Part shown: in pieces, positions 4,520-47,700 of the stretch
Layout: the number at the start of each line of letters is the position of its first letter
Numbering within the stretch: position 1 is the stretch's first letter
From: Lepidodermella squamata
Taxonomy: Eukaryota > Animalia > Gastrotricha
Assembly (NCBI GenBank): GCA_047495785.1
Contig: JBLDXI010000009.1
Span: forward strand, 4,464,001 to 4,528,000
Direction of reading: 5' to 3'
DNA: 64,000 bases
Notes under the pieces: model-generated
What the model was told of the DNA's origin: nothing
Seen by the model: only the letters and a program-made list of their open reading frames with translations
Databases searched by the model: none
Position numbers and translations under genes: made by a program

Positions 4520-5864
4520 CTATCGCTGGATACAATTTCCTTGAGCGTCCCATCGCCCTGAGTCTAGGCATTCAACTGTATTATCTCCGTCAAGTCTCGT
4601 ACCTCGGCCGCATTGAAATAAGACGATATAGCCAGCTCGAAATATCGGGGTTCCATTTCGCATAGGTACTCCAGCCGCTGATGGTCTGAAAATTCGAGCA
4701 TGAGGCACTCTAGGCAGACCAACGCAGAAAACCCCTGGCTTAGAAGGGTCCGGCTTTTCAGTCGGAGCCAAATATCGCGGCGTAGTTAAACGCTCAGGAT
4801 TTAAGGTGGCTTGCGTAACCAGATGCAGAAGATTCGCTCTATTCACAGGGTGTTCGTAAATCCAATCATCAGAACCGTCATCCGTCATCAATTTAATCCA
4901 AGACCGAGCCGAGCAGACTCGAGCGTAAACTCCTGCTGAATGCTGAAAAGCCAACTGATTCCTCAAATCCATCCTTTGTTGATTGCAATAGCCAAAAGAA
5001 GTGACTCCGACGATATACCACTGATTGAGGGGTGACTTGCATATGATAGGGCTACCCGGGTCGCCAAGACACCCTGGGTTCTCAGGATCGGCGTAGTTCT
5101 TCCCAGCACAGATTGTTTGCTCCGAGAATGGGCCAGCCCATGAGCAATGCCGCTGATATTTTACGACCAATAGATTCGACTTCCTTAAGATTTTCTGCTC
5201 GTAATCACTGTAAGGTGGCCGTAGTCTGTCGACGCCCCATCCTGCCGTGAAGACATCAGAGCATTGGTCGACCTGCTCACTGAAGGCGTCGAAGGTCTTT
5301 CGAACTGAATTATCTTGGCAATAAGAATTCGGTAGGTCGATTGGAGATATTTTTGTAGTAGGGCCGACAACTCTGTTGAGGCGGATCAGAGCAAAATCAT
5401 AGCGTTTATCGGTCCTATACGACGGGTGGATGAAGATTGAGGAGGCCTCAATCGTTTGCTCAACTTGTCCACTTTCGTAACGAAGGCCCAAGTCATGACG
5501 GCCGAATTTCACAACAATGCTAGGGAAGACAGCTTAGTATTAGTTGAAAGACTTTGTTTATGGTATACCTTTGTACCGGAAGCTCTTCTCGGTACATCAT
5601 GCAGTGCGCGGCTGTCAGCACCCATGTTCCGATGATTAATGAACCGGAGCAAAATCCTTTGACATTATTCAAATAATTGAGCGTGAGATGAACCTGGAAG
5701 TGTAAACAAAGCTGAGGAGATGTGGCAAGTGAAATTAAGCTAACCATCCAAGGGTACTCATGCCGTTCGGCCGCATCGTCAGGAGCCGGCTCATCCGTAT
5801 GCTGCCATGCTGATCCTGTGCAAATTGCACCTGTAATTACAACAAGTGTTGCTAACGACTTCAT
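4520..5864 (-). CDS. Serine protease homologue (Ser->Pro) with C-terminal sushi/CCP domain
   Basis: Signal peptide; EYPWM, CSGSLI..WVLTAAHC, YDFALIRL, CLGDPGSP; C-terminal CVGLPRVPHA...FQCGRGTRLDGDNTVECLDSGRWDAQGNC. Confidence 0.85.
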
Positions 5865-5960
5865 TTATTACGCGTCAAATGAACTCAACCATGAAAAATA
5901 TCCGTTAAAAAGTTGACTTGTACTCAAGACCGGTGCTTTCATCGTAATTATCATCTTTAT

Positions 5961-8217
5961 TCACAGCGAGTTGATCAAGTAATTAGGCCCGAAAGTCACG
6001 GCAGCAGTGACGAATTGGTTGTAAGTGTGAAAAGAACACCTCTTATGCGTATCGTAATGGATAAATCTTTTCGTTTGAGCCAGTCCTGCCATTGATCTAA
6101 GGAAAACTCATCTAAAAGACTTGAAATTCGAGATAAAGTTTTACTTACGCAGTTTCCCCAAAGCCGCTCCTTGATATTAGCAAGAAATCCATTTTCGTCA
6201 AAATGAGCCAGTCCACATACGTTTTTGCTACCAATCTCCAAGCTGTTTCGTGATCCGAGGCATTCGCTACGCTACTATTAGCCTGATCAACATGGTTTAT
6301 GGTAAGATTATGCTCCGCTCCACTCGCGAATATCGTAACATTTGAAGCATCAGTCATATTGCCACGTAAAATTTCGACAGCTCCAGGCCAGTCTGTTGTA
6401 ACAAATATCACAATATTTGTTCGATTTGCAAAATGGCGTGATTTTCTGATCTTTTCGTTAATAATTTTGGTTGCTTCCCTTGCAAAGCAGGCTATTTGGT
6501 CAGGCGAAACTCGTAAACCTCGGTCCAATTCGAAATTCGCCAGGTTTTCCATTCTCAGTTGCACGCCGATTTTAGTCGAATTTAGCCATAATTTCCAACC
6601 GATTGTTGAATTTATGACTTGCTCGAACAATTCTTGAAGACGATCCGTTGGTCGGGATAACGTTGCGCGATATCCGGCTGAAATTATTATTGGGAGATCG
6701 CTTGGGCTGATTTCGCGCCACGGCATTTCGTATTCAGCCATTTTTTCAATGATCGACGTGAACTTTCGGTTTCGCAGTAACGAGCCTAGCCCGGCGTAAC
6801 GATTTGATACAAACTCGATATTCGAGTAATTGTGCAACTTTTCTTCGAAAGCACTGCTGTCCAGGTAATCAACGATGTCGTTTTCCTCACCGAATTTGAC
6901 CATTTCGAAACATCGCCTCATCGATTCATTCCTCTTGGCTTTATAATCCTTTTCCGAGAGTAGCGGGTATAAATGCTTGTTTATCTTGAAGTACTCTCCG
7001 AGATCGATTGGCCTCAGCAAATCTGCATGAAAAATTCGATTGGTTCCTATTGCCAAGTAAACAGTGGTGATCTATTTAACAGAGTGTCAATCTATCAAAA
7101 GATATTTCGGGAAAAAGCTAACAAATCCTCGCAGTCTGTCTCCGAATCCTCCACAGGGGTAACCGTGGTATTCATAAGGACAATACGCTGATATGAATTT
7201 AGCTGGCGTTGTTTTGTTAACAGCTGATGAGAAGTAGTTCTTGATCAATGAATTCGCGACTCTTTGCGCGGCAAACTGAAAGATCAATGCCTGGGACTGT
7301 TCGTCATCCGCCTCGAGAACTCGGAAGTATTTACGCTCAAATGTGTCATAACGTGGTAGTATCAGGATTCCCTCAACAAAGCTGACGAAAACATCCCTTC
7401 GTACGTTACTGCCCTTAAGATCTTCTTTCTTGAAGCGAGTTGTTATTAGAAGCGTTGTAGGAGGGTGATCTTGCATATATTCATTGTATCGCTGATGAAA
7501 TGCCTCAACTGGCGCATCTTTCAGATGTTCGCAGAGGTTGTAAACTTCATCTACCGATCCTCCGAAAAATCGGCGTGAGTAGTGAGGATGACTCATTGAG
7601 GTTAACTCTTCCACTCGGTCGTCATTCAAGGTCTTATCGAATACTCGAAGCCTTTTGACGTTAGGATACGATCTATGTAAGACTGCTATTCGCTTGGAGG
7701 CTATTTTCCGCATATCGAGCTTCCATGCTATCGTTACTGAAGTATCAGTAATTATGACGTAATCGAATTGTTTTGAATCGAAAACTGGAGTTTCTTCTTT
7801 GCTGTCGATCAGAAATTTGCAAGGGTTGATTCCACTCGATAACTCAGATGACCGGTCAATAATTCGAAGCGGTATGATATCAGGCTTGGAGGCCATATCT
7901 TGCAAAGTCATGTTTGAGGTCACACGTTTGTTGAGTAGTGGGAAGGCGGTCAAAATGACACGTCCACAAACATGGTCACTGTTGTCTTTCATAATAATAT
8001 AGCGCTTTGTCTGTTCGATGAAGCGTTCCATGATATGCGCATTCACGGAACCATTGTTGTAGACTACAAAAGCAATGCGGATAGTTTTGGATTCGCTGCA
8101 ATTCGACGATGCAGGCAGCGGATTGATCAGCGCATTTTTAGAATTCAACCAAGATGAGCTTAAAATGAGGAAGGAACACGTGATTAGGATGAGGAATCCA
8201 GTCCTATAACGTTGCAT
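5961..8217 (-). CDS. Type II membrane two-domain glycosyltransferase, copy 1: degenerate GT6/ABO-like domain + GT-B fucosyltransferase domain
   Basis: ORFs 7087-8325 and 6145-7056 are joined by a 51-bp GT-AG intron (7072-7122); N-terminal TM; VLHRSY and FFGGSVDEV (GT6-like); CGGFGDRLRG, IGVQLR, VTTD, DWLILTKMDFLLISRSGFGETA (FucT motifs); last exon ends at TGA 5961-5963. Confidence 0.8.
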
Positions 8218-8321
8218 GCCACACTTTGGAACTTTCCGAGCCGCTTCACATTTTATCATCCAATTTAATTGAAAACAATCTAAAATTGGTAGAAAATAAA
8301 TAGACGTTAGTATTTTATTTC

Positions 8322-10405
8322 TCACAAGGCTCCGTAAGGAGAAGTGCCCGGATTAGGAAAGAAGACGTTGTAGCTTTGAAACGGGCATTTTAGTTTATCA
8401 ACATCCCAATGAATGAAACGCCGAGTTGGTTTCAACGAAGCCATTGATCTACAGGACGATCAAGTAGAAAATGTTGATCAATCTCAAATAAAACAACTTA
8501 CGCAGTTTCTGCCAGGCCGCTCCGAGAAATGACTAGAAAATCCATTTGAGTAAGCAGGTACCAATCGAGGTAAGTCTTCGCCATAAGCCGCCAAGATTCC
8601 TCAGAATGCCGCACAGAATCATCCAACTTTGTATGATCAACATGAGCAAGGGTCAAATTCATTTCTTCCCCAGTAACAAATATGGACAAATCATCAAAAC
8701 CAGTCATATGAGACCGGAAAATGTCGAGAGTATCATTCCGATCTGTGGTTAGAAAGATAACCACCGACTTCCCTCGTTCCCCAAAAGGACTGAGCTTGTG
8801 GCGCAGGATTTGCTTAACCTCGTCGCTGAAACACCCGAACTGTTTCGGCTCAACACGAGTCCAGGCGTCGCTTTCGTGAGTTACAAGCCATCCATAGCGA
8901 ATTTGAACTCCTATTCTCACAGAATTACGCCACTTCTCAAGACCAACACTGCGTTCGACGACTTCATCTTTCAGCCGATCGAGTTTTGGTGCCAGGTGAC
9001 TCAGAATCAGCCGATAAGCCGCAGATATGAATATAGGATAATCGAATTTCGCAAATCGGCCGTTGTCGAGCTTGTACTCAGAAGCTTTTTCAATTGCACT
9101 CGCGAATTTTGGGTTCCTCAAATATGAGGAAAGGCCGCTGTATCGATTCGCGATCAGTTCGATGTTTGAGTAGTTGCTGAGAACTGATTCGAAGGTCTCG
9201 CTATCCATGTATTTTACAAATGGCTCGGCAACGTTGATGTTTCCTATCCTCTTCGTAGTCGAATTATCTGGTATTGCACGGTTGAGAGCTTTGTAGTAGA
9301 CTGATTCATCAACTCCATAGAAATGCTCGTTAAGGAGGAAGTAGGACGAGAGGTCCACAGGTTTAGGATGATTCACATGCAGAACTCGGTCGGTCGCTAT
9401 AGCCAGGTACAAACTGGTTGCCTAAGAATGCAATCTATATGAAGTTTCAATTTTTTAGTAAAAACTTACCACCCCTCTCAAACGATCACCCCAACCTCCA
9501 CATAAGATGTTGATAGGACAGCTTGCTGAAACATACTTCAAATCGTCTTCACCAGATTCTATTCTGCTTTTCATTCGTTTCAAGTAATTCTTCTGTATAG
9601 CTCCAGCGACTTTGATAGAAATTTCTTGATAATTCGACGATTCAAGGTAATCATTCAGCTCTTCCAAATCCCTGCCGAATTTAAGTTCAAAGCTGCTTGG
9701 TGGAGCTGTGAATTTGATGGATTTTTCCAGTCGTTTAACGCTCATTCTCTCCAAAGCAGTGAGATTTGCGAAGAACTCAAGATCGCCTGGGTAAATTATA
9801 ATTTGGCCTCTATTGCTCGTATGTAAATATCGGTTGTAGCTGCTATGAAATTGGTCACGTGACTGATTTTCGCCAAAAGACTTGCACATATCCTCAAGAA
9901 ATTGTCGTGACCCACCTAGCATCAAACTTGAGTAATGGTAGATCAAGTTTGATCTGAAAGGCGTGACTGTCCTTTTCAAATTAGGAGCTGCTTGGTGTAG
10001 GACAGATACAACATCAGCTATCAGATTGTTCGCAACATCGATTTTGCCTGTGATTTTGACTGATCCATGAATGAGTAGAAGATGCGATGCCTTAGCCGTA
10101 TCAACTTCGTAGCGGTACTGATTTAAAAGAAAGCAAGGAGATTCTCTTGAGTATTCTGCAGGGTTTTCGACGTTTTTCTTATCACCAACATTGAAATATA
10201 CAATCGGGTTGTTCACTAGAAATTGCTTCAAAGACTCGACCTGACCAGAACTCGGCGATAACAGGATGACACCCAACACTACTCCAGATCCTGGAGACAG
10301 GCCCCATTTTTCAAGGCTAAATGAGTTCAAGTTGAGTGATATAAAGGTTACGCAATAGCATAAGATTAGGGCGAGGAACACGTCTTTCAGCGAGAATGAA
10401 CGCAT
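8322..10405 (-). CDS. Two-domain glycosyltransferase, copy 2 (pseudo-GT6 + fucosyltransferase)
   Basis: Same exon structure; N-terminal TM; VLHQAAP, MLGGS; CGGWGDRLRG, IGVQIR, LTTD, DWYLLTQMDFLVISRSGLAETA; stop at 8322-8324. Confidence 0.8.
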
Positions 10406-10541
10406 TAGTAAATAAAAGGACTTGAAATAGTCATTTTTCTCTAATGCCTTATGATGCTACATAAAAAATGTAAACATACTCTTCTGAATACATTACGCTC
10501 TTTCAAAAGTGATTAAAGCCATTTTATTCTTTGAAAAGACT

Positions 10542-12828
10542 TCAAAGGGAATGTACGCCTCGCGTACCGAACTGAACAACACTAGGCATGAATGTATTAT
10601 AAATTTGAAAGGTGCACGTCGGTGAGCTGGACGGCTCCCAATGACTGAATCGCCTTGTTGGTCTAAGCGACAACATGGACCTAAAATAGCATCATAATTT
10701 ACGAAAATCAAAAATAGAAAATGCAAGACGTACGCTGTCTCCCCGAAACCACTGCGTGAGATGACTAAAAAATCCATTTTTGTCAAAATGTGCCAGTCGA
10801 GATACGCCTTAGCGTGCAGCTGCCAGTCGTACTCATTCGCAAGATCAATATGAGTCAAGGTCAAATTTTGCGCCTCGCCAGTTGAGAAGAACTTGAAATC
10901 CGCCAAACCTGTCAAATTTTCGCGCAAGATTTCGATTGCCTTCGGCCAATCTGTTGTAGCAAATATCACAATCGATTTTTTTCGGTCGCCGAAGAACTTT
11001 CTAGATCGCAGAATTTCACCATGTACCAACTTCTTAACTTCAATAGCAAAACAATTAATTTGCTCTGGTTTAAGGCGCAACTCTGTGTCCCCGGCAAATC
11101 CGGATAGTTTTTCAGTTCTAAGCTGAACACCGATCTTGACGGAATTGCGCCATATATCCCAACCAACCGTCGCTTCGATAGTTCGGTCGAAAAGTTGGCT
11201 CAATCTTTCCGTCGGTCGGTTGAGGGTGAGCTTCAGAGCTGCTGAGATGAACAAAGGGTATTCGATCTGATCTTTCTTGTGCAAACTTCTTTCTGTGATT
11301 TGTTCGATATTTTCGTTAAATACGCGATTTTTGAACATTGCATCGAGCCCGGAGTAACGATTCGTCAGTAAACCAAGATTTGTGAAGTTCCGCAACACTT
11401 CTTCGACGAAATACTTGCTATTCAGGAATTTGACAAACCACTCCCCAGCGCCCAGATGGTTGAGATAATCGAACGATTCCATAGACTTATTATACTGGAT
11501 TTGATAGCTTCCAGCTGGCATTTCGTAGAAGTCCTCGTTGATCTGGAAATATTCGTTGAGATTCACAGGTTTCTCGATTGAAATGTGGAAAATCCTTTGA
11601 GTAGCTATGGCCATGTAAAATGCTGTAACAAGCCCTCGAAATCTGTCGCCAGTCCCTCCACATGACATATTTATGGAACATAGAGATGTTAGGAACTAAA
11701 AACAATTAACTAAAACTTGAAATCCGTCAGATATTTTAAACTCACCCCAACATTAGGTTGAGTATCGTTCTCTCCAGATTCTTGGATTTTCTTAAAATGA
11801 TCTGAGACTCTGTTCATGTAATTGATTTTGATAGTATGAGCTAGTCGCAGTGCAGCTTGTTGGTATATTTCACTTTGAACTAGGTCATCATCAACTTCCA
11901 GGGTTCTGACGTACTCCAACTCTTCCGGCTCATGTTCTGGCATGAAAAGGCTATCCGTTAGAAAAACATTCTTCGCCTGCCAGATTTGCCAAGTTACATT
12001 TCCCAATTTGTCGTGAAGGCTGTACGGAAATACAACGGAATTCGGCCGGATTTGTCTGACGTAATCGTTGAATTTGGCATGGAACTCAGATCGATCATCA
12101 TCGCGGAGATTCGCGCACATTTCCGAAATTCTATTTCTAGTTCCTCCGAAGAAAAGGCTGGAAAAGTGCGGCGTTGTAGTAAGATTGCTCTCATGTTCTG
12201 TGTAACTCTTCATATGCCTCAAATTGGGAAACGAGTGATGCAGGGAGACTAGGAAATCCGATAGCAGAGAATTCCCAACATCGATCTCCCCTGCGACTTT
12301 GACTGAAGAATCGACTGCGATAATATTATCAACAATGCCGGATGCCAAATGATTTTCCATAATATCTAAAACTAGGCTGCATGGGTTTGAACGACTTGAT
12401 ATCGTTTTGTTGATCAATATGACATCCCGAGGTATTTTCTTGGCATTTTTACGATGAGAAATGATGTAGTACGTCACGCGTACGAAATGGCATCTATCAG
12501 AGGCACTTCCACCCTCGGCTGGTTTATGACTAGTCCCTATGAAGAAATGTCTCGCGGCGTCAACAAATTTCAGCGACTTGTCCAAATAATCCTGTTCGCG
12601 GTTTTTGTTAGAGTTGAACAGAATAACGGCTAATTTAGCTCGCTCGCTGTTGATCGCACAACGCCATGCTGAATTAGCGTAAGCCACGCCGGGTTTCCGG
12701 GTGGAAAGCAGTTCTCCATCTTGCATGAAGAATGAAATAGCGGTTAGATACGCGAACAGGATCAGGGTGCAAGATACTAGAATGACTAGAAAAGCTTGCT
12801 TTGTAGGGTGCATAGATATTTCCTGCAT
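10542..12828 (-). CDS. Two-domain glycosyltransferase, copy 3 (pseudo-GT6 + fucosyltransferase)
   Basis: [49 protein letters not shown] (GT6-like); CGGTGDRFRG, IGVQLR, DWHILTKMDFLVISRSGFGETA; stop at 10542-10544. Confidence 0.8.
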
Positions 12829-13207: not shown

Positions 13208-14425
13208 ATGAATTATACATTTAATAGAACACTTTCGAAATACCCTATCGCTTCGATACTAAATGGCGCTTGGCTAAATGTAAACATACCTGACAGAGGT
13301 TACGACCGAGCTAGGCCCTACTTTGTAGGATTCTACCATGACGTAAGTTCAACATCTGTGCAAGATAGGCTAGGATGGACCCTAGCTTGCAGTCTGATGA
13401 CGTGTCTAACGATAATTTCATCAATCGCAAACGTATTTGTTTTCATTCGACGGGGCGTTAAAAGAGATTTCCTCATCTTGACATGTTTCCTGCGCTTTGG
13501 GAACGTAATTTTCGCAACGTTTTACTCCTATGGGTTGCTGACCACTTTAACAACGGGCTGGTGGAGTTCCTCATCGGAGGCTTGCACAGTCGCTTTCTGG
13601 TTGGTCTGGGCCTCCGGAGGCCTCGGCGTGGTTATGGAAGCTTTGATTTCATACGAGAGACGTCTATGCATATCGTCGAATGCGATCAACTACAAACCTA
13701 GCTCTCTAAAGGTTTACCTACTTTTCAATTTTTAATAGTGGCTTTTATATTCGCTGTTTCAGATTGCTTCGTTAACTCTGCTTTTCACTGTTATTTGTTC
13801 CGTACTCAGTGGAGGTTTCTCTTTTTGGCCATGGCGAACCTTTACAACTCTGAAAATAATCATCACGGGGTCCAATGACGAGCAACCAGTTTTGATTTGT
13901 GCGGATTGGGACTACAGCCTTGACGGCAGCAGTCTAGACACATCAGTACTAATAGTGATCTATTACTCAGTAATGTTCACACCTTCCTCGGTTTACCTGG
14001 CTTACAATTACTGGGTTATTTTCAAAACCATTGATCAATTGAAAAAATCTCACTCAACTACGCAAGGAACGATAGGAACGGCTGATTCAGCTCTTTCCAC
14101 ACGAAAACCGAATTTGACCGAATGGCAGCGGAAAGAGATTTATCTCGTCAAACTATCTTTGACCAGCTACTTTATTTTTGTGGTCAGTTACATTCCCGGG
14201 TTAATATCAGTTATAACCTTTTGCACGTGGTCGTTAGGCTCGTGGTATTTTGAACTGGCAGGGGTCAGGAAATTCGCCCTGTTTTGCGTCATCAGCGGGA
14301 TGTTTTTCAATAATGTACTTCAATGTATCACGCCGTCTCATATTGAAGCGATTTTCGACAAAATAGCTGGATTCAAATCGAAAATGCTTAGATCTGCCGG
14401 TGAAAACCGTATAGCCGCCGAATGA
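13208..14425 (+). CDS. Orphan rhodopsin-like (class A) 7TM GPCR, 2 exons
   Basis: Seven hydrophobic segments; N-glycosylated N-terminus; Cys at top of TM3, ISYERR (DRY-like), ECL2 Cys, SYIP in TM6; intron 13712-13761. Confidence 0.75.
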
Positions 14426-19884: not shown

Positions 19885-22503
19885 ATGATATCATTACTGA
19901 TCATCTCAACTATTCTGATCGCAACCGCGAATAGTACGGTAATTAGCCCAGTGTTATTAAACGCTACCATGGAGCCTCTGATAACATCCACCTTGAATAC
20001 TTCTAACCTTACCCCTTTGAACATTCTGGCAGCTGTTAACTACGGCGGAATGATATTACCAGCTGGTCCTGTTTGCTCGAAAGCGATCGAATTAGCACTC
20101 GAAAGACTTAGCTCTCAGCCAAACTTTCTCGCTGGTTACAACTTAGGCGTTGAGCTCATTGATGATAGGGTAAAACTCGTCTAACTTCACAGTTTAATAA
20201 CTCACAAAATTGTCTGTAATAGTGCGATGATGCTACAGCGGTACGACAAACCACTTTGAGGCTCCGGCAAGACAACACCACATCGAACACGTTACCTGTC
20301 CTTTTGATTGGCGAATGTTCCGGGCGAGCTCAGCTTATAGAGTCCCAGTTAACAAAATATTTCAACTTTATAGGAGTAAGCCTTAGGCGTAAGGGTAAAT
20401 GTTTCTCTGCATATGAACTATTTTAACTAGATCACAAATGCTCTACAAAAGATTACGATAAAAAAAGAGCCGAGGTACAGCTCTGTATTTCCTCTAATCG
20501 TCCACCGTTTGGAGGGTTTCATAGCTATGGCTCAGCTGATAAAACAAAACGGCTGGAGCCAGGTGGCTATCATTTCAGAGGACTCAGCGTTCTTCAACGG
20601 AGCAGATCAACTTATTTTCGAGCACTTCCCAAGTCAGAATATCACTGTCCTTTCACTGTCGAAAATCTCTGCCCAAATACAAAGTGAGGAGGAGATGTTA
20701 CCGGTCATGAACGATCTCAGGAAGTTTGAACCTAGAGTGATCCTATCAAATACTAACAACCCCGTTAACGTTGCTTGCTGGCTGCATCGCTCCGGGATGA
20801 ATGGACCGAATCTGGCGATCCTTGCAAGTCTGTGGAGTGCGTTCAACCCAGATACGGTTGCCATTCCTAGTTACCTTCAACCATGGTGTACCAGGGATAT
20901 GTTGCGTGGCTTAGCTGAGAACTGGTTATACTACCTTGTTGGTTCTGTTCGAGATCTGTATGGCCAGACGTATGAAGATTCCACTGGGCTAAATGGGCTC
21001 CAATTTAATGCCCAAATGTTGAACAAAGTTGTGAATGGGAACAAAAGCCCAGCTTGGTCAGTGTGGCCGTCGTTATGCTACGAACTTACGCTATACACAG
21101 GATACATTCTGAACTCGACAGAAAACTTACTGAAATCACAATTTAATTCAACCTTGAAAGACTGGACGACTGCTACTGACAATTTCAAAAGAAATGGCGT
21201 GAATTTCGTTGAATCGATGAAGGAGGCAATGTATTCAACCAAGGTCATTGGTGGTAAGGGGGAGTATCTCATGGATCGAGATACAGGACTTAACACTAAA
21301 GGATTCGCCCCTACAATATTTTCCCAACAGCAGTACCGTAAAGAAGGACTTACAAGGGTGAACATTGGCTACTACAAAAACAGTGATAGAAATATAGTCC
21401 CCCTTAATGGCGGCATCAAATGGTTAACATGGGACCGGAAGCCTTTTAGAGACCAATTTCAAATAGTTAACCTGGAGATAGCCCCTGTTGACGTAGCAAT
21501 TTTTGCAACATTAGTTGGTCTATCTTGCCTTGGAATAACAGGTCTAGTTTATTTGCTAGTTCGTAACGTCAGGTCTTTTCAATTTGAGGATTTCTTGCTT
21601 CTCGGCGGATCGTTCACTATGCTAGTTCAGAACTTCGTTATTCCTTATGAAGAGACACCAGTACTTGCTTCGCACTGCAATGGCATAGTTGGGCTCATCT
21701 TTATTGGATATTGCATGTCGATCACCTCAATTGGGTTAGTCATTCACGAGATGCTAATACCACTCTCTTCGCAACGCCGCCGCAAACACAAGCGTCAAAA
21801 CTCTCAAGATGAAAAGGCCCGAATTCAAATGGGAAGATTTCGCTCCTGTTTGTGGATACTTGCGATAATTGTTATGGTCATTGCTTTTTCAAGCATCGGA
21901 GGATTTGAAACCACTCAAACAATTTTGCCTCGTATTGTTTCGGATGATGGGACGACTGTTTTCATTCCGATTAGGCTTCAATGCCAATTATACTCGAATC
22001 CAATGGCTAGTTTCGCTATTTTTCTAGCAATAATAGGCTTGGAATCTCTGGGAATTTTCTGGATGAGTTTCAAGCTTCTTCAGCTGAGGACAGTAAGGAT
22101 GCCTTTTGTTCGGTTTACCAGAATAAATTTTTATTTTTATCAGATGATTCGGTCAGTTGATCAGGCCAATCAAGTGCAATTTCTGCCAAGGTTCAAACGA
22201 ATCGCGCTAACAGTTTATTGCGAGCTCTTGGTATTAATCGCAGGCGTGGCGATTGGAGAAGCAATATCGGCTGCTTACACAATAATTTTAGCCTCGTGCA
22301 CTGCAACTGTAATTGCCTTCATCCATTCCGCGTCACTCTATTTCCGAACGGTAAGTAAAATGCTGAATTTTACAGTCAATCGTAATTTCAATGAATTATT
22401 ATTCAAGAATCGACATGCTACTACTTCACTTGAGATTGATCTACACAGTATCGCGACAGGTACAACAGATCGAACACTCACGAAAACTGCGGCATGGGCT
22501 TGA
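19885..22503 (+). CDS. Class C (GABA-B-like) GPCR copy 2
   Basis: Collinear paralogue: AIELALERL, NGWSQVAII, EPRVILSN, FAPTIFSQQQY, 7TM. Confidence 0.8.
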
Positions 22504-23268: not shown

Positions 23269-24306
23269 ATGCTTATTTGGCAGGCACCTGTGATAGCCTA
23301 CTCAGACGCCTTTCACCGAGCAGCGAGGCGTGGAGATCTCGCTCGTTTGAAATCAATCATCGCCGAAATTCGATCAAAGCTACCAGATGATGCTAAGGAA
23401 CTTTACTCACCTTGCATTCCGTTGATCGAACACAAAGATGGCGAGCACGAGTTAACTCCTCTAATGGACGCAGTCACCTACAACCATCTATCAATTGTTC
23501 AATACCTATGTGAGGATTTGGGTGCGGACGTTGAAGCAAAAGGCCGTTTCGGCTCGACAGCTTTACTCTACGCTGCAGAGGTTGGCGATCTCGAAATTAT
23601 GAAGTACCTAGTAGAACGTGCTGAAGCTGACATTTGGGCTCGAGAGTCCGAATTCGGAGCTCTGGCGATTCATCTCGCTGCTGAGTTTGGCCATCAGGAT
23701 ATCCTAGAGTACCTCCTCGAAGTCGACCCAGATTTACTTGAGGCTAAGACCGAATTAGGCGACACCCCGTTATGCCGAGCTGCGGTTGGCGGTAATCTTG
23801 AAATTGTTCAGTATTTAGTCGAAGTTAAAATGGCCAATGCGGAGGCTAGAGGGTTTGAGGGCCGAACTGCCTTACTCAAAGCCGCTGCTGAAGGGAACGC
23901 AGCTATAGTCAAGTATTTAGCGAAAAATGCTAGGGCTGTTGTTGATGCGAGGGATCGGTCGGCCTACGAGTCTCATGCTCTTCATTTGGCTTGTGAATTT
24001 GGCCATTTGGAGGTTGTGAAAGCACTGTTGGAGATCAAGCCTGAACTGGTTCATTTGCGAATGGCTGCGAACAGGGAGTTCCCAATTGACATATCTGAGC
24101 GGACTGGTAACAAGTTGATCGCAAAGGAGCTTCGAAAGCATCTGAAATTCGACGAAACAGACGCGGCAGAAAAGAAAGACGATGAGAAATCGGAAAGCGA
24201 TGGTGAGAACCAGGACGAAAAGGATACGACAGACCAAGCTGGTAACCGCGGATCGTCCGGTTGGTTTTCTTCGTTTGGCTTTGGCCTTTGGTCCAAAAAC
24301 AAATAG
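23269..24306 (+). CDS. Ankyrin-repeat protein (about 7 repeats) with acidic C-tail; true start may lie in an upstream exon
   Basis: Repeated TPLMDA / TALLYAA / AIHLAAEFGH / TPLCRAA / ALHLACEFGHLEVVK motifs. Confidence 0.9.
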   Translation: MLIWQAPVIAYSDAFHRAARRGDLARLKSIIAEIRSKLPDDAKELYSPCIPLIEHKDGEHELTPLMDAVTYNHLSIVQYLCEDLGADVEAKGRFGSTALLYAAEVGDLEIMKYLVERAEADIWARESEFGALAIHLAAEFGHQDILEYLLEVDPDLLEAKTELGDTPLCRAAVGGNLEIVQYLVEVKMANAEARGFEGRTALLKAAAEGNAAIVKYLAKNARAVVDARDRSAYESHALHLACEFGHLEVVKALLEIKPELVHLRMAANREFPIDISERTGNKLIAKELRKHLKFDETDAAEKKDDEKSESDGENQDEKDTTDQAGNRGSSGWFSSFGFGLWSKNK

Positions 24307-27555: not shown

Positions 27556-30500
27556 CTAAAAGGCTGTCACTAGACGCGATTTGGCGAGCTTAATCGTAAC
27601 AAACTTAATGAGTTCTTGAACTCCTCGCACAGTGAAAAAACAAGTCCCTAGGTTGATATAGGATAACAGTACTATCATAATACGAAACTCAAGCGAAGGC
27701 ACAGGAAATGTCCCAAGAAATTTCTGTATAGACAGCGGCAGATATATGACAATAAAATGATTTACAATGAAAAGAACCGCAAGATGAGCCGTAAAAAGTC
27801 TGCTTCTGAAAAAGGCACTTCTAAATGGTGGTCCAACTGCGAAAACAAATGCTGACCAGACGTATTGGAACACAGTGATGCCATACATCGCGAATACTTC
27901 GAAACTCCGGAATGATCGGTCATATAACGTGTCCTAAAACAAAGAAAGATGACCATCCTGTACATTTTCAAATTAAAATGCGCACCTGTGGGATGTTATA
28001 AGGTAAGAACCAGGGTTGCTGCTTCAAGTAGGTATACACAAGTATTTGAAATGCCACATTCACCCCATTGTGCGCCAAAATAGGAACAATTTGATACGTT
28101 GATAGCAGGTGCTTTTCCGGTCTCTCTTTGCTAAGGCACGTATGAAAAGCCGGTACAAACGGGAAGGTCAAAGAGAGTGTTGTCAGCAAGAACATATCCT
28201 GATAGAAGAATGATACGTCCGTGAAATTCGCTTGATTCCAATACAACATGCACATTGACGCGAACTGTACAATTGAATAAGAAACCAGAACACCAAAGAG
28301 GCCAAAAGTTGACACGAGCGAGCAACGACCTTCTTTCAAAATATCGATGACTGGTGAGATATTACGGTCCTTGCAGGTGAATGAACTAGCGACTGATGCT
28401 TCAGCCTCGGTCAAGGCTATGCCAACATCAGCAGCTTTCAGGGCACAGCAATCGTTCGTCCCATCTCCAACCATAGCCACGGAATATCCGAGTCGATTTC
28501 TGAACTCAGTAACAACTTCAGCTTTTTGATCGGGCCGAAACCTAGCGTAGACAACGCATCGTTCCAGAATAGAATTCATAGCATTGACACCAAAAGAACT
28601 GTTTCCTTCGACTTCATCTTTGACAATTTTCCACGCATCTTCCGTAATGGCAAGTTTTTTGCCGTAGAAAGATCCTTTTTGATCAAGGAATTGCTGGACA
28701 GAGATTATGCCTTCTTCTTCAGTCGGGACTTGACCCTTGATTGTGATAAGATCGTCTCCGGAGAGGAAGCCACATTTCCTTGCAGTTGCAATGGCTGTTC
28801 TTACGTCATCTCCAGTGATGATAACGCATTGAAGTCCAGCTGCTCTGATTTTCGCGATTGTTGATACACTTTGAGGCTTCAGCGAGTTCTCGAATAAAGC
28901 GGCTCCAAGAAGGACAAGTCCATTCTCATCTGTATCCAAATCGAAAGATTCCAGTTTCTCCTCGCCTGTTAGTTTTCTTGCAGCAAGAAGGATTACTCGA
29001 ATTCCTTGGCTAGTTACTCTCCTGATCACCTTATCGATATCCCTCGGTATTGAAGTTTGATCACATCGGGATAAAATGTGTTCTGGAGCCCCTTTAACCA
29101 TCAAGTAATGCTCGTCTCTATTGACTCCGACTAATACAGCCCCGGAGCGGCGTTCCGGTGAGAATCCGAAGTTCCTCAACTGCTGTAGTTTCATTCCAGG
29201 TTTTGCGGATGAATAGAAGAGTCCGGGTGAAACCAAGCAGAAAGATGTGATTTTCAGTAGCTCAATGTCAATCGGATCACCAATAGGTTCCGTAGTCGAA
29301 TTCTCCTCAGCATGTAAATGCTGTGGTAATAGCGTGATAGTGTTACAACAAGCAGCGCAAATCTCCAATTTTTCATGCATATCACTAGAGAACACGGGCA
29401 GTGTTGAACTACTGCTATCCACGGCAAGAATCCTCTGAAGTTTGACGGCCTCCTCAGTCAGAGTTCCGGTTTTGTCGAAGCAAATAACGTCGATACTCCC
29501 AGCAGGGGTAACAGACTTGGGACTGGTGCAATAGACCCCTTTCGCTCTCAACCTCAACTGGGCGATAACTTGGGAGATTGTCAAACCAACAGTGATTTGC
29601 GGTGGGATTACAACCGAAGCTAAGGCCAGGCACATTACGACAATTAAAATAGGATCTTCTCCACGAATAATGCGAATAACCAAGCTGTAGATAATCCCAG
29701 ACGAGCCGATTGTCCCCATCAGAGCCATGAATTTATAGGTTTCAACTGAAAATCGTCTATCAATCAGTGACGGCCGCATAACAGCCCTAACTAAACTTCC
29801 CCGCGTTGTTGAGAATCCAATCGACGTCACCATTCCGATAGTTGATTTGCTCACACTTAGTAACTTAGTCCCCGAATGAAGTCGATTCATCTCGGACTGA
29901 GATTTAGAATCGCCAGTTGGTGACGCGTATTTCGTGACGGGAGTTACCTCTCCAGATAACATTGATTCATCCACGAGACAGGATCCTTTGATGATAACCA
30001 TGTCTGCTGGAATATCAGGCAATTCTCCGCCCTCCTTCTGCTCAAGGAAAACAATATCTCCTGGCAGGAGTTTTGAAGAATCGATCGGAGTTGAGTAACC
30101 ATTCACATCTAAACCGGCCATGATCATCACTTTCTTTTGACTGTTAGACCCTGAAACTGCATTCCGAACTGATTTTTCGTTAGAATGAGTCATGTATGCC
30201 ACCCAGACTACAACTACGCTAGTAAATACTAGAAGACAAGCCGGATAAATCGAATATCCAATTGAAAACCAAATAGCGATGCAGGCGAATTGGAAAATGT
30301 AGAGTGGGGTGAAGATTTCACGCCAGATTAGTAACAAAAATGGAGTTCGAGGCACTGGTGTAACGTTGAAGCCGCAAAGTACACGTCTAGACCATGGATG
30401 GTGAAATTCATCGATTTGATCATTCTTTTCCACAAGGTTATTTAGCAGAACTGGTCCGGGTACGAACTGGTAACAATTCCAATCGAAAACTATGGGAGTA

Positions 30501-31590
30501 CTCTCGAAGTTGAACAAAAGCCACGTAAGACCCTTGAAATCTTGATTCTCCGTGGAAGTAGAAGTCCTTTTCAAGAGCACTCCTCTGCGTGAAGCTAGCC
30601 AAAGGCTGCGAATATGTGCTTCATTTGTCCCATCGGTTAGCTTTACATGAGTGGCAGAATTAGCATTTCTGAAATCGACCCTTTTAGATGTAAAGATGAG
30701 TTGCCATTCAGGTTTCCAGTAGCAAGTTATTGCTGCAAATAAGCCTCCAGTGAGTACAGCCAGGACATAGAAGATTGCAGTTTTGAGACAATCTAGCCTA
30801 AAACGATTTCATTATATTTTGAATATAGGGCTAGCTAGTAAGCTTACTTGTAAAGCTCGACTTTCAGTGTTGTATCATTTGCTGATAGAAATTGCTCAAA
30901 AATAGGCGAATCATTAATTGAAATGGCTGCGTCACTACCCTCGAGTTTGACCTTTTTCTTGGTAAAATAAGGCGGTGGCGTCTCAAGTCGTTGGAATAAC
31001 TGCCGGTCCGCGTTCCAGAAAAACACCCCACAGTCTTCGAGGTTAACCCCAGCATGTAGCTGGTTGTTCTGCTGCTCGACGTGAACTTTGAACAGGCCAG
31101 CAGAATCGCCTAGTCTCGTAAATTCATCTCTGAACAGCAGTTTCTGCTTGAAATTGAGCCATGTTCTGTTAATTGGTGGATATAGTTCAAAGTTGGACGA
31201 GCCCTTGTTTCCAGAGTTGAGAAGAGCGCTAGGGTCTTCGTGGTCTTTTGGCGCTATCAAAACAGGCCAGCAAACAACAGGTTGGCGGCGAAAGTTGACA
31301 TTTGCAAGAAAAGCCGTCGCCTTTTCAAGTGAAGATCTCTTGTGAGTTAGTTTGACTAATTTTGCTTGAAAAGCTTTGCGAAATACGATGAGAAGCAACA
31401 AAGGAAGTAAGGCCATTGATGCAAATGAGAGGATTGCGAATAGAATGATCCGAGCCATTGAGAGACTGTAACATTCGATCGAGGAGACCATTGATGGGTC
31501 ATCAGTTTGAAGAATACTTCTATCAGTATCATGTTTTCCATCTTCAGCTCTGGACGGCTCTTCGTTGCTAACGTATGCTGAATTATCCAT
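27556..31590 (-). CDS. P5B-type P-ATPase (ATP13A2-5-like)
   Basis: DESMLSGE, CFDKTGTLT, KGAPE, ITGD, ARFRPDQK, MVGDGTNDC.ALKAADVG, EASVAS.FT, EGRCSLVS; 50-bp intron 30798-30847 links the N-terminal exon in frame. Confidence 0.92.
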
Positions 31591-44761: not shown

Positions 44762-47700
44762 CTAGGCGGATATTAGAGCTTTGGCAAACTTCTGGCGTAG
44801 CCGGAGATTACGCAGCTGACCTAAGAGAAGAGAAGCGGAAAAATATGAAAATTTCAAAAAGCTTCTATCACTCACGAGGCTCGTCAGGTACGCAGGCGGC
44901 AACAACAGCTCGCAGGCCGAAGACAATGTGCTCGAAAATGATGAAAACCCAAAATCGCCACCAAATTGATAACTCAGTGCCCCAGGAGCTCAGCAAAACT
45001 TCAAGATTAAGTAATTACTATATTGAATTTTCCGAAAATGCGGAAACATTCTTACCGACTATCAACGGATTCGTGATGATGCCACAAAACGTCAAAAACT
45101 CGACAATATCAGCCCAAACTCCAATTCCATTCGATTTCATAGAAACAGGCCGGCGGTAAGATTCAACCCTTGAACAAATGCACGTCTAAATCTACAATGC
45201 AAATCGAAAATGCTCACATTCTTCCTATATCCAGGTTGAGATCGATTCGCATGATGATCATGGCCAGAGCTGGGGCTGGTGGTAATGCTACGGCGAACAT
45301 TTGAAGAGCCCCAAACACAATCGTTTTCTCAATGAATTCTTCGATTGTGAATTCACGCCAGCTAATCGTTGACAGTTCCTGCAGATTGTCGTACTGGTTA
45401 TCCAACTCTTCCACTATCTTTTGCTTATCATTCCCCTTGTTGCCAATTGCCGGCAAACTGCTGACTTTCTTGCCAGATTTCAACGAGGTGAAAATACCGA
45501 TGACAATCGGTAGTAAACGGTCTTTGATTGTATGAATCAAGGGCGATGTAACTATGATGCTGAGCAACTGCTTTGACAACATGGCCATACACGGCATTTG
45601 TTTACAAGTTCGATACCGCGCCGAAGCTACTGCCTGTTGGTCGCTGACATCAATGCCTGTCAGCTCTGGGGCGAAAACCACAGTATCACCGTAGCTAGGC
45701 CCGACGACAAAGGCGATGTAGAAAAGGATTGAATAGTTGTTGACAAAGCGAAATGCGAACATTTTCAGTATCAGAGAGCTATTGAAGCTCGATTGAGTCG
45801 AATGGCCCTCCAAATGCGTCAGAGGGTAGCAAACATATGAGTAGAGTCCGTCCAGGATAACGATTGACACGGAATGAAGAACAACGCAGATTATGTTGCA
45901 TAAGAACCAACTGGACGCTTTCGTAACAAAGCCCTCGTCTTCATCGCCTGGCGGAGGGGGTGGAACCTCGCCCTTGATCGGGGCCGCGAAGTGACAGTAT
46001 TTGATCGAAAGTTTGACATCGAGCTGATTGATCAGGTAAATCGACCCCCAGACGCTGAACATGAAAAGTAGTGTGACTACGAAACTCGGTACGTAGGTGA
46101 TCCAATGAGTTCTCGGAAAGCTGTGAAGACGTTCGACAACTTTCAACGTATATACATTGACTCTTCGCAACTCGCTATCCTCAAGGCCGCCAACACGCCA
46201 CAGGAACTTGTACCAAACCGCACGACGCTTCCAGAACTCGCCGAATACAGTGCCCCATAGTATCATGACAGCTGCGAATCCAATTGTAGCGTAATTGTCG
46301 CAGGCCTTGGCTAGGACCCATCCCACTGTTTCTTGCTCTTCGTTCAAAGCATTGCCAGTTGTGTTACTGACTTGGAATGCGTAATAGATGAGACCAGCGA
46401 TGAACATAAGTACGCCGATAATTCCAGGGACCGAAAGGCTCATGATCAAAAGCTCGATCCAGGCGAAGTAGAAACCGATTTTCTCGCCGAAATAAGATCT
46501 CAGGGTGTCTAATGGTAGTAAGTGGTACATTCTGTATAGCGATGAAGTTGTGGACTCGGATTCTGCATAGTCTTTATCTGTGTCCAGCGTTCCGTCTCCG
46601 TCATCGTCCGATCGGAAGAATCGAATGGTCAAAGCGTTGCGAATAGCGCTAACCCGGCTCAAGAAATTTCGTTCATCTGAACAAGAGAAATTCCAAGCCT
46701 GTAAGCAGAATTAAAGGCTGAAACTCACTTTCATCAGGCCTTTTGTCATAATCCACACAGTCGACCGTATTCGTGTACCAAAATGATCTCCACATGTGAC
46801 TTGAAATATGAAAACATGATGTTGATCACATTTTAGTGTTTATAGTTGCATCTTACCAAATCTTTCCTCCAAACCCGGCTTCTGGGCTAGAAGGTTGGCA
46901 GCAGTAGCAACTTTCGCACTGGCATGTCATGCAGGGGAAACAACAGTTGCGGCAGCATTTTTGGCCCCGTTGGTCACCTGGCTCTATTTTGGTCTTGTTC
47001 TGAAGAGCAAGCGGTTGATGCAAGCAAAGCCAATCGTCGAAGATGCCCCGCTCGATGACATCGGTGAGGTTTACCTCAATTGTTGTCATTTTGTTATCGT
47101 CCTCATTAGAGCCGCACGATAAGACATTACGCCAGGGTGAAATCCCGCTTTCAGGCATATCAAGTTTTAGTCGTGCTCCTGAATCAAGAATGAGTCATCA
47201 ATCGCCTTTAAGCTTACAGAATCATACCTATTAAAAAGTGATACGCCAAATCGTGCCGTAGTTGAGGTGGATACGAATTTCGGCCTCTGGAGTTCAAATT
47301 GTATTGAAACATTTCATCATTCAGCTTTCATCTTACTTGCAATCGTGGAATTCCTTGAAGCGATACTCAACATTCTGACCACCAGCTTTTCCTTGTTGGC
47401 CTCCGCTAGTTCTAGCTTTCTTTACGAAGCAGAACGTTTTGTAAGCTTGAACACCCAGATGGGGCAACGGATTCGATTTGTCGCCATCTTGAGGGACGGT
47501 TTTCGGCAACAATCGCCATTGATAGGCCATCAATTGGGTCATAAGGCCGAGATGAGCGAACGACAGATTGATCGCGTAGAAAATGTGGTCTTTCGATTCG
47601 AATTTCTCGTAAGTCACACCATACTCAGATTTTAGGCTCTAAAGGTCGTATTCAACAATTTTTAATTGTTTAATTTAATTTAATTAAATTAAAAAAAAGT

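Follow-up and report, generated by a model that had tools for sequence, protein, structure and literature searches.

Three tandem genes of Lepidodermella squamata encode proteins joining a predicted GT6-like domain to a GT37-like fucosyltransferase domain

A tandem array of three two-domain genes

We analysed a stretch of 64,000 nt (the window) from the genome of Lepidodermella squamata (Gastrotricha; assembly GCA_047495785.1, contig JBLDXI010000009.1, positions 4,464,001-4,528,000, forward strand). Six long open reading frames (ORFs) are located on the minus strand within 6145-12828 of the window, and stop codons part the two members of each ORF pair in the genome. When spliced, these ORFs form three complete reading frames, tandem paralogues that occupy 5961-12828 of the minus strand (copies 1, 2 and 3). 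The N-terminal half of each protein (N half) has a predicted glycosyltransferase fold closest to family GT6, to which the ABO enzymes belong, and the C-terminal half (C half) resembles the fucosyltransferases of family GT37. A preliminary description, made from the sequence alone, had already joined the six ORFs into three proteins through introns of about 50 bp; all the ORFs were present and the three frames do join. The genes and introns are the following:

5961-8217, minus strand: copy 1 gene; exons 8217-7123, 7071-6149 and 6096-5961; 717 aa; spliced frame open
8322-10405, minus strand: copy 2 gene; exons 10405-9470, 9421-8502 and 8448-8322; 660 aa
10542-12828, minus strand: copy 3 gene; exons 12828-11746, 11695-10734 and 10680-10542; 727 aa
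7072-7122, minus strand: copy 1 intron 1, 51 nt, GTTAGC..AAATAG, within the GT-B domain
6097-6148, minus strand: copy 1 intron 2, 52 nt, phase 2; site shared with copies 2 and 3 and with L001, a metagenomic relative
9422-9469, minus strand: copy 2 intron 1, 48 nt
8449-8501, minus strand: copy 2 intron 2, 53 nt
11696-11745, minus strand: copy 3 intron 1, 50 nt, 22 codons upstream of the copy 1/copy 2 site
10681-10733, minus strand: copy 3 intron 2, 53 nt

Each gene has three exons and two introns (48-53 nt), and all six introns are GT..AG. The three introns originally placed at 7072-7122, 9422-9469 and 11696-11745 were right. However, that model had a single intron per gene, and missed the second intron (52-53 nt) and the short third exon. 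Copy 1 without intron 1 reads GF followed, across the joint, by ITTVYLAIGT, collinear with the unbroken GL VTAFYMAIAT of copy 3. Intron 2 cuts an Ala codon after ...GETA and is followed by a short conserved last exon (SM..L..T+RF.H....C.F..YN.F), which was matched by the C-half profile in copy 2 (E 2.4e-5). Overall identity among the three copies is 35-38%, with 44-46% between the C halves and 23-31% between the N halves. A six-frame profile scan of the window revealed exactly these three copies and no further one.

Intron 1 has phase 0 in every copy, but its position in copy 3 is 22 codons away from that in the other two. The gene of a relative (L001, 1836-3773) has no intron 1, and intron 2 is common to all of them. 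The pattern of intron 1 points to intron gain or sliding in a young gene family.

Contigs of sequencing run X1 bear a loose end of the SMART oligo (cDNA adaptor), indicating that they derive from RNA. One contig joint (11695 to 11746) skipped 50 nt with plus-strand ends CT..AC, corresponding to intron 1 of copy 3. A second joint (10678 to 10732, cut +2) skipped 53 nt, corresponding to intron 2 of the same copy (about 10681-10733). Both copy 3 introns are therefore spliced in RNA, and the two halves of copy 3 are on one RNA. The intron expected at 11696-11745 was thus borne out by an RNA junction; by contrast, and weighing against the gene models of the other two copies, none of the X1 joints listed corresponded to an intron of copy 1 or copy 2.

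In copies 1 and 2, exon 1 already holds CGG(F/W)GDRLRG, which supplies the GT-B domain with its first strand and its glycine-rich loop (CGGFGDRLRG in copy 1, where the fucosyltransferase domain starts). Intron 1 of these copies lies within the GT-B domain, and the two halves cannot therefore be separate genes. Moreover, two metagenomic relatives (P0001 and P0002), located in tandem on one scaffold, harbour both halves in single uninterrupted ORFs of 645 and 649 codons, and this locus keeps the second intron and the last exon. The intron position, the bridging X1 cDNA and the uninterrupted ORFs of the relatives indicate that the fusion of the N and C halves into one polypeptide is real, as the preliminary description had claimed. 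The stop codons between the ORF pairs might suggest a gene-model artefact, with the N and C ORFs being separate genes. This is extremely improbable: it was ruled out by the intron inside the GT-B domain of copies 1 and 2, the cDNA contig spanning the copy 3 junction and the relatives with one unbroken ORF, and the C ORFs by themselves lack a signal anchor.

By hydropathy, each protein starts with a short basic tail, and its one hydrophobic segment follows near the N terminus. This fits a type II (Golgi-type) membrane protein in all three copies, the topology initially described. The anchor and the helix between the two domains were located in copy 3:

12727-12795, minus strand: copy 3 signal-anchor/transmembrane segment (aa 12-34 by hydropathy; helix 8-37 in the model)
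11776-11928, minus strand: copy 3 long inter-domain linker helix (aa 301-351, DSSP on the model)

The C-terminal GT37-like half

The C halves and their motif I were assigned by AlphaFold 2 (AF2) modelling, profiles and alignment to AtFUT1, the Arabidopsis xyloglucan alpha-1,2-fucosyltransferase of family GT37:

10542-11695, minus strand: copy 3 GT37-like GT-B domain (exons 2 and 3; AF2 and profile)
5961-7155, minus strand: copy 1 GT37-like domain (equivalent of the copy 3 domain)
8322-9502, minus strand: copy 2 GT37-like domain (equivalent of the copy 3 domain)
11117-11134, minus strand: copy 3 motif I, IGVQLR (aligns to IGIQVR of AtFUT1)
6553-6570, minus strand: copy 1 motif I (equivalent of copy 3 IGVQLR)
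8897-8914, minus strand: copy 2 motif I, IGVQIR (equivalent of copy 3 IGVQLR)

The donor-binding motifs (GxGDR, IGVQxR with its invariant Arg, HxD and ISRSGFxETA) are fully conserved in the C half. The Gly and the Arg of motif I, IGVQ(L/I)R, are invariant in 36/36 family members, and motif III, D..L(L)T.MDFL.ISRSGFxETA, is intact in all three copies. The motifs first listed for these C halves (GxGDR, IGVQ(I/L)R and D/E..LL...D.L.(I)S.S.F) are all present.

Pfam gave no match for the C-half ORFs of the window, including the xyloglucan fucosyltransferase family XG_FTase (PF03254). A profile of the three C halves retrieved 91 proteins (E<=0.001) from a library of 1.84 billion representative proteins. 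Nine of these 91 relatives matched PF03254 weakly, only one of them (P0045, 25.9 bits) above the cutoff of 23.4 bits, and one matched NodZ. A 36-sequence family profile (A5) compared with PDB matched AtFUT4 (3.4e-6), AtFUT1 (1.2e-4) and FUT8 (0.15). The AF2 model of the C half reached a predicted local distance difference test score (pLDDT) of 90 and a predicted template modelling score (pTM) of 0.89. Foldseek matched this model with AtFUT1 (2.8e-10), and the structural Z was highest for AtFUT1 (17.4; root mean square deviation, rmsd, 3.7 over 256 residues), followed by FUT8 (15.7), NodZ (15.3), and then POFUT1 and POFUT2. Every solved structure with Z >11 was a GDP-fucose-dependent fucosyltransferase (GT37, GT23, GT65 and GT68), and the nearest ESM Atlas clusters carry FUT8, NodZ, O-FucT and XG_FTase domains.

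Based on profile and predicted fold, we conclude that the C half is most probably a GT-B fucosyltransferase, of a new subfamily nearest GT37, in agreement with the GT37 likeness first noted. Its conserved motifs suggest a working enzyme with GDP-fucose as the donor. It shares with GT37 (AtFUT1, FUT4; PF03254) the GT-B variant fold, the best PDB match by both profile and structure, and the motifs GLG(N/D)R, IG(I/V)Q(V/L)R and motif III. The differences are an identity of about 15-18%, the lack of detection of the window proteins by PF03254, and the animal rather than plant origin. Furthermore, the window model aligns with AtFUT1 173-487 whereas AtFUT1 runs past 550, and the extra C-terminal acceptor-binding region is lacking.

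We considered it unlikely that the C half, although a GT-B enzyme of this superfamily, uses another donor or has another role. The XG_FTase domain is absent from the window proteins and marginal in their relatives, the Z values of GT37, FUT8 (GT23) and NodZ are close to each other, and AtFUT1 itself can use GDP-Gal (PMC9201394), all of which would allow such a role. The restriction of solved structures with Z >11 to GDP-fucose-dependent enzymes, the conservation of the motif I Arg and of motif III, and the domains carried by the nearest atlas clusters argue instead for a fucosyltransferase.

The N-terminal GT6-like half

The GT6-like core of copy 3 was delimited on the AF2 model and by structure searches, and those of copies 1 and 2 by alignment with it. 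The positions of the GT6 catalytic motifs are listed together with the cores:

11929-12651, minus strand: copy 3 GT6-like GT-A core (aa 60-300)
7345-8091, minus strand: copy 1 GT6-like core (aa 43-291)
9695-10291, minus strand: copy 2 GT6-like core (aa 39-237)
12304-12312, minus strand: copy 3 degenerate DXD site, D173-S-S (aligned to ABO D211-V-D213; end of model strand 168-173)
7738-7746, minus strand: copy 1 degenerate DXD site, D-T-S (aligned to ABO D211-V-D213)
10061-10069, minus strand: copy 2 degenerate DXD site, H-G-S (aligned to ABO D211-V-D213)
12079-12081, minus strand: copy 3 His250 where GT6 has its catalytic Glu, ABO E303 (family F-H on D302-E303, two HMMER alignments)
7495-7497, minus strand: copy 1 H241 at the ABO E303 position (HMMER alignments)
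9845-9847, minus strand: copy 2 H187 at the ABO E303 position (HMMER alignments)

The N-half model of copy 3 has a pLDDT of 73.8 (80-94 in the core blocks) and a pTM of 0.68. All of the top 50 Foldseek matches were GT6 enzymes (ABO/alpha3GalT, E 3e-11 to 8e-10). VIA-align gave a Z of 15.8 for BoGT6a (rmsd 3.4 over 191 residues) and 15.0 for human GTB; the next GT-A family in an all-against-all structural search was GT8 (LgtC, Z 10.4), about 5 Z units below GT6. The shape search of the ESM Atlas with the N half retrieved a PF03414 cluster only. At the sequence level, 25 of the 26 sequences listed when the core profile was compared with PDB were ABO chains. These weak matches are collinear through the DXD site, FFGGS and the LN.Y helix. 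According to HMMER and the secondary structure of the model, the NIIAVD strand followed by SS aligns to VCVDVD of ABO, the ...LFFGGT strand and the next helix to ...GFFGGSVQEV, and the helix EFHAKFNDY to (W)HDESHLNKY. The N halves keep FFGG(S/T), two invariant Cys and an open frame.

Several observations weigh against the assignment to GT6. The fold assignment came from a single AF2 model on an 11-sequence alignment, and the mean pLDDT of the five models was 53-74. The best ABO chains matched the N-half profile with an E of about 1, which is not significant, and Pfam gave no PF03414 match at E<=1 for the N-half ORFs of any of the three copies. Searches of PDB by phmmer with single halves gave no match, and neither did a homologue search with the copy 1 N-half ORF. 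A homologue search with an alignment of eight full-length relatives retrieved P0001 and three weak matches only; its word index was too coarse. In a language-model search with the N core, phage clusters came first and GT6 appeared at rank 27 (score 0.87).

Consequently, the sequence evidence that the N half is homologous to GT6 is marginal, while the model indicates a GT-A domain with a predicted fold that resembles GT6 by a clear margin over the other GT-A families. The GT6 part of the preliminary description thus stood as to the predicted fold, but was not backed by Pfam or by a significant profile match; the models did give the expected pair of folds, a GT6-type GT-A and a GT37-type GT-B. 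Descent from a different or unknown GT-A family, the GT6 likeness being due to convergence or model bias, is in our view quite unlikely. The profile E of about 1, the lack of a Pfam match, the phage clusters ranked first by the language model (GT6 27th at 0.87) and the shallow alignment behind the model speak for it. These are outweighed by the distance of about 5 Z units to every other GT-A family, the exclusive presence of GT6 in the Foldseek top 50 and the atlas shape list, and the weak sequence matches, nearly all ABO and collinear through three motifs.

Compared with GT6 (ABO GTA/GTB, bovine alpha-1,3-galactosyltransferase and BoGT6a of Bacteroides ovatus; PF03414), the window proteins share the type II topology, a GT-A fold nearest to the GT6 structures, and the collinear DXD-site strand, FFGG(S/T) strand and following helices. 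They differ in the lack of a Pfam match, the low identity (about 13-15%), the absence of DXD, the change of Glu to His and the loss of WHD. Moreover, the GT6-like domain is N-terminal to a second transferase, whereas in GT6 it ends the protein, and it comes from an invertebrate. A 2014 account restricted GT6 to vertebrates, some bacteria and phages, and two protists, and gave it as absent from invertebrates (PMC3961637).

The DXD motif is lost in the three copies (DTS, HGS and DSS in copies 1, 2 and 3), as is WHDESH; these losses and the FFGG(S/T) motif, read by eye in the preliminary description, were reproduced when the profile was aligned to ABO chains. None of the ABO residues W300, H301, D302 and E303 is kept. 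Two low-scoring HMMER alignments to ABO chains put His at the catalytic Glu position, in all three copies as well as in P0001 and P0002. We take E192 of BoGT6a to be the counterpart of ABO Glu303. The BoGT6a E192Q mutant has low activity, and those bacterial GT6 enzymes that carry NXN need neither metal nor DXD for activity (PMC3961637); the loss of the Glu is therefore a stronger sign of inactivity than the loss of DXD.

Other data weigh against an inactive N half. Bacterial NXN enzymes being active, DXD loss is no proof of inactivity; the first Asp of this site, a ribose contact in the bacterial GT6 family, is kept in copies 1 and 3; P0002 keeps D-G-D; and three more distant fused relatives (P0006, P0008 and P0009) appear with Asp at the Glu position. 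Some family members may therefore still be bifunctional, for instance P0002 (DGD) or P0006, P0008 and P0009 (Asp at the Glu site), judging from their sequences. A conserved C-terminal Lys binds the UDP diphosphate in GT6 (K231 in BoGT6a, K359 in alpha3GalT). In copy 3, the region in which this Lys would be sought (residues 265-300, after the core) has low pLDDT and lies outside the HMMER alignment.

The N half evolves faster than the C half. Among the differences listed between copy 1 and run X2 (DNA of a related strain), there were 7 synonymous and 10 nonsynonymous in exon 1, compared to 11 and 3 in exon 2; these counts serve as an indication. Nevertheless, although the paralogues are only about 25-30% identical here, all of them retain in the N half the reading frame, two invariant Cys and the set of motifs, and the N half is thus maintained by selection.

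The protein could alternatively be truly bifunctional, the GT6-like half being active in a metal-independent manner with non-canonical residues, and one chain building a two-sugar motif such as an A/B-like trisaccharide. We regard this as improbable. The activity of bacterial GT6 without DXD (PMC3961637), the first Asp retained in copies 1 and 3, the invariance of the His at the Glu position in the three copies, P0001 and P0002 (which is then under constraint) and the existence of two-domain bifunctional transferases such as PgtA (PMC6939170) would be consistent with it. The low activity of BoGT6a E192Q, with E192 read as the E303 counterpart, the additional loss of the flanking W-H-D residues, the much faster change of the N half and the absence of even the first Asp in copy 2 (HGS) argue for a GT6-like half that has lost its activity.

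Relatives, genomic neighbourhood and proposed role

Fused proteins were defined in the library of representative proteins as those whose C domain starts at residue 290-425. About nine representative clusters have the fused architecture (P0001, P0002, P0003, P0006, P0008, P0009, P0019, P0020 and P0004). P0004 was first a candidate for a stand-alone C half, which was rejected: inspection of its locus revealed an N-half-like ORF directly upstream, and it was counted as fused. An iterative search ties the N parts of P0001, P0002, P0003 and P0006 to the N halves of the window. All 14 fused or close clusters looked up (14/14) came from ENA metagenome assemblies and had no protein name; a chytrid protein, distant and uncharacterised, is the sole relative with a name. 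Neither the looked-up clusters nor the protein library yielded a named protein of this architecture. Literature searches on GT6 with GT37, on GT6 in invertebrates or rotifers and on GT37 in metazoa brought up no description of a GT6-GT37 fusion. The architecture, which the preliminary description did not recall having seen, is thus rare (about nine clusters) and appears in no paper found.

In the C-domain tree, P0001 and P0002 fall in one group with the three copies (support 96/94), among which copy 1 is sister to copy 3, indicating that the array is old. The locus of one relative (L003) has the fusion gene, a trypsin-like gene and an ANF-receptor gene, the same neighbours as in the window; the relatives are therefore animals. 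In other members the N part is short or of another kind (P0016, P0017, P0026 and P0007, the last seemingly with only a short N part), and the GT6-like module is accordingly accessory to a conserved catalytic core. In P0038 (776 aa, metagenome), a distant relative of the C half, an N-terminal DUF268 (2.6e-21) replaces the GT6-like module, which constitutes another N-terminal module swap in the family.

A trypsin-like serine protease gene with a Sushi repeat follows the array 96 nt downstream of copy 1, and it and the three fusion genes form a set of four same-strand genes parted by 96-136 nt. In every fusion gene, an AATAAA coincides with the stop codon or lies no more than about 20 nt away. 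The tight spacing of the genes may be due to a very compact genome or to an operon-like arrangement with trans-splicing; there were no spliced-leader ends among the X1 loose ends listed. The X2 DNA (roughly 1-2% different from the window) has two forms of the copy 2-copy 1 spacer, one identical to the window and the other skipping or replacing 92 nt, which suggests divergent haplotypes. The neighbouring features of the window are:

4520-5864, minus strand: trypsin-like serine protease gene with Sushi repeat (Pfam Trypsin 1.8e-16)
5865-5960, 8218-8321 and 10406-10541: spacers between the four same-strand genes
8221-8314: region of the two X2 spacer forms
13208-14425, plus strand: two ORFs with several hydrophobic segments adjoining the array, which look like exons of a seven-transmembrane receptor
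20509-22503, plus strand: gene with an ANF-receptor-type ligand-binding domain
23269-24306, plus strand: ankyrin-repeat protein gene
27968-30580, minus strand: P-type ATPase gene
45214-46662, minus strand: anoctamin gene

We propose that the three genes are old tandem duplicates of one gene. Their proteins would consist of a short cytoplasmic tail with a signal anchor, a GT-A domain derived from ABO/GT6, a helix of roughly 50 residues and a GT-B domain. The C half would transfer fucose from GDP-fucose onto a lumenal glycan; an alpha-1,2 linkage to Gal would follow by analogy with GT37. The GT6-like half would no longer transfer sugar, being retained as an accessory module that may position, oligomerise or target the catalytic domain, space it from the membrane or possibly bind a glycan or a nucleotide. 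Overall, we consider it likely that the C domain fucosylates lumenal glycans with the GT6-derived domain as its non-catalytic partner.

The preliminary description went further, proposing a fusion of two successive steps in a blood-group-like pathway, with the GT6 half retained as a glycan-binding (H-antigen), processivity or retention module. Residue conservation does not support H-antigen binding, as the ABO acceptor contacts around W300 and E303 are not conserved. There is a small chance that an invertebrate lineage independently built a blood-group-like pathway by fusing GT6 to the fucosyltransferase that makes its acceptor. In this clade the GT6 half would have lost catalysis but retained a pocket for a sugar or nucleotide, now being a lectin or sensor that directs the fucosyltransferase to certain glycans, with some relatives possibly remaining bifunctional.

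Type II proteins with two tandem glycosyltransferase folds include LARGE1 (GT8 and GT49) and EXT1/EXT2 and EXTL3 (GT47 and GT64), and certain domains of the EXT family are without catalytic activity and have a structural or assembly role. To our knowledge, none of them joins a GT6-type fold to a fucosyltransferase, and the families and products differ. PgtA of Dictyostelium and Toxoplasma (GT2 beta-1,3-GalT and GT74 alpha-1,2-FucT) also has a GT-A-type domain joined to a fucosyltransferase, and its domains act on consecutive positions of one glycan (PMC6939170). However, PgtA is cytoplasmic with both domains active, whereas the GT-A half of the window proteins looks inactive and the families are GT6-like and GT37-like rather than GT2 and GT74.

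GT37 has been treated as a plant cell-wall family; here, GT6-like and GT37-like folds are predicted in one animal protein. The family lies outside Pfam recognition and is seen only in environmental sequences among the 1.84 billion representatives. If our reading is true, these genes would be a natural case of a glycosyltransferase fold turned into the non-catalytic partner of another transferase. They would also represent a new, strongly diverged animal branch of the fucosyltransferase superfamily and a starting point for work on the fucosylated glycans made by small invertebrates.

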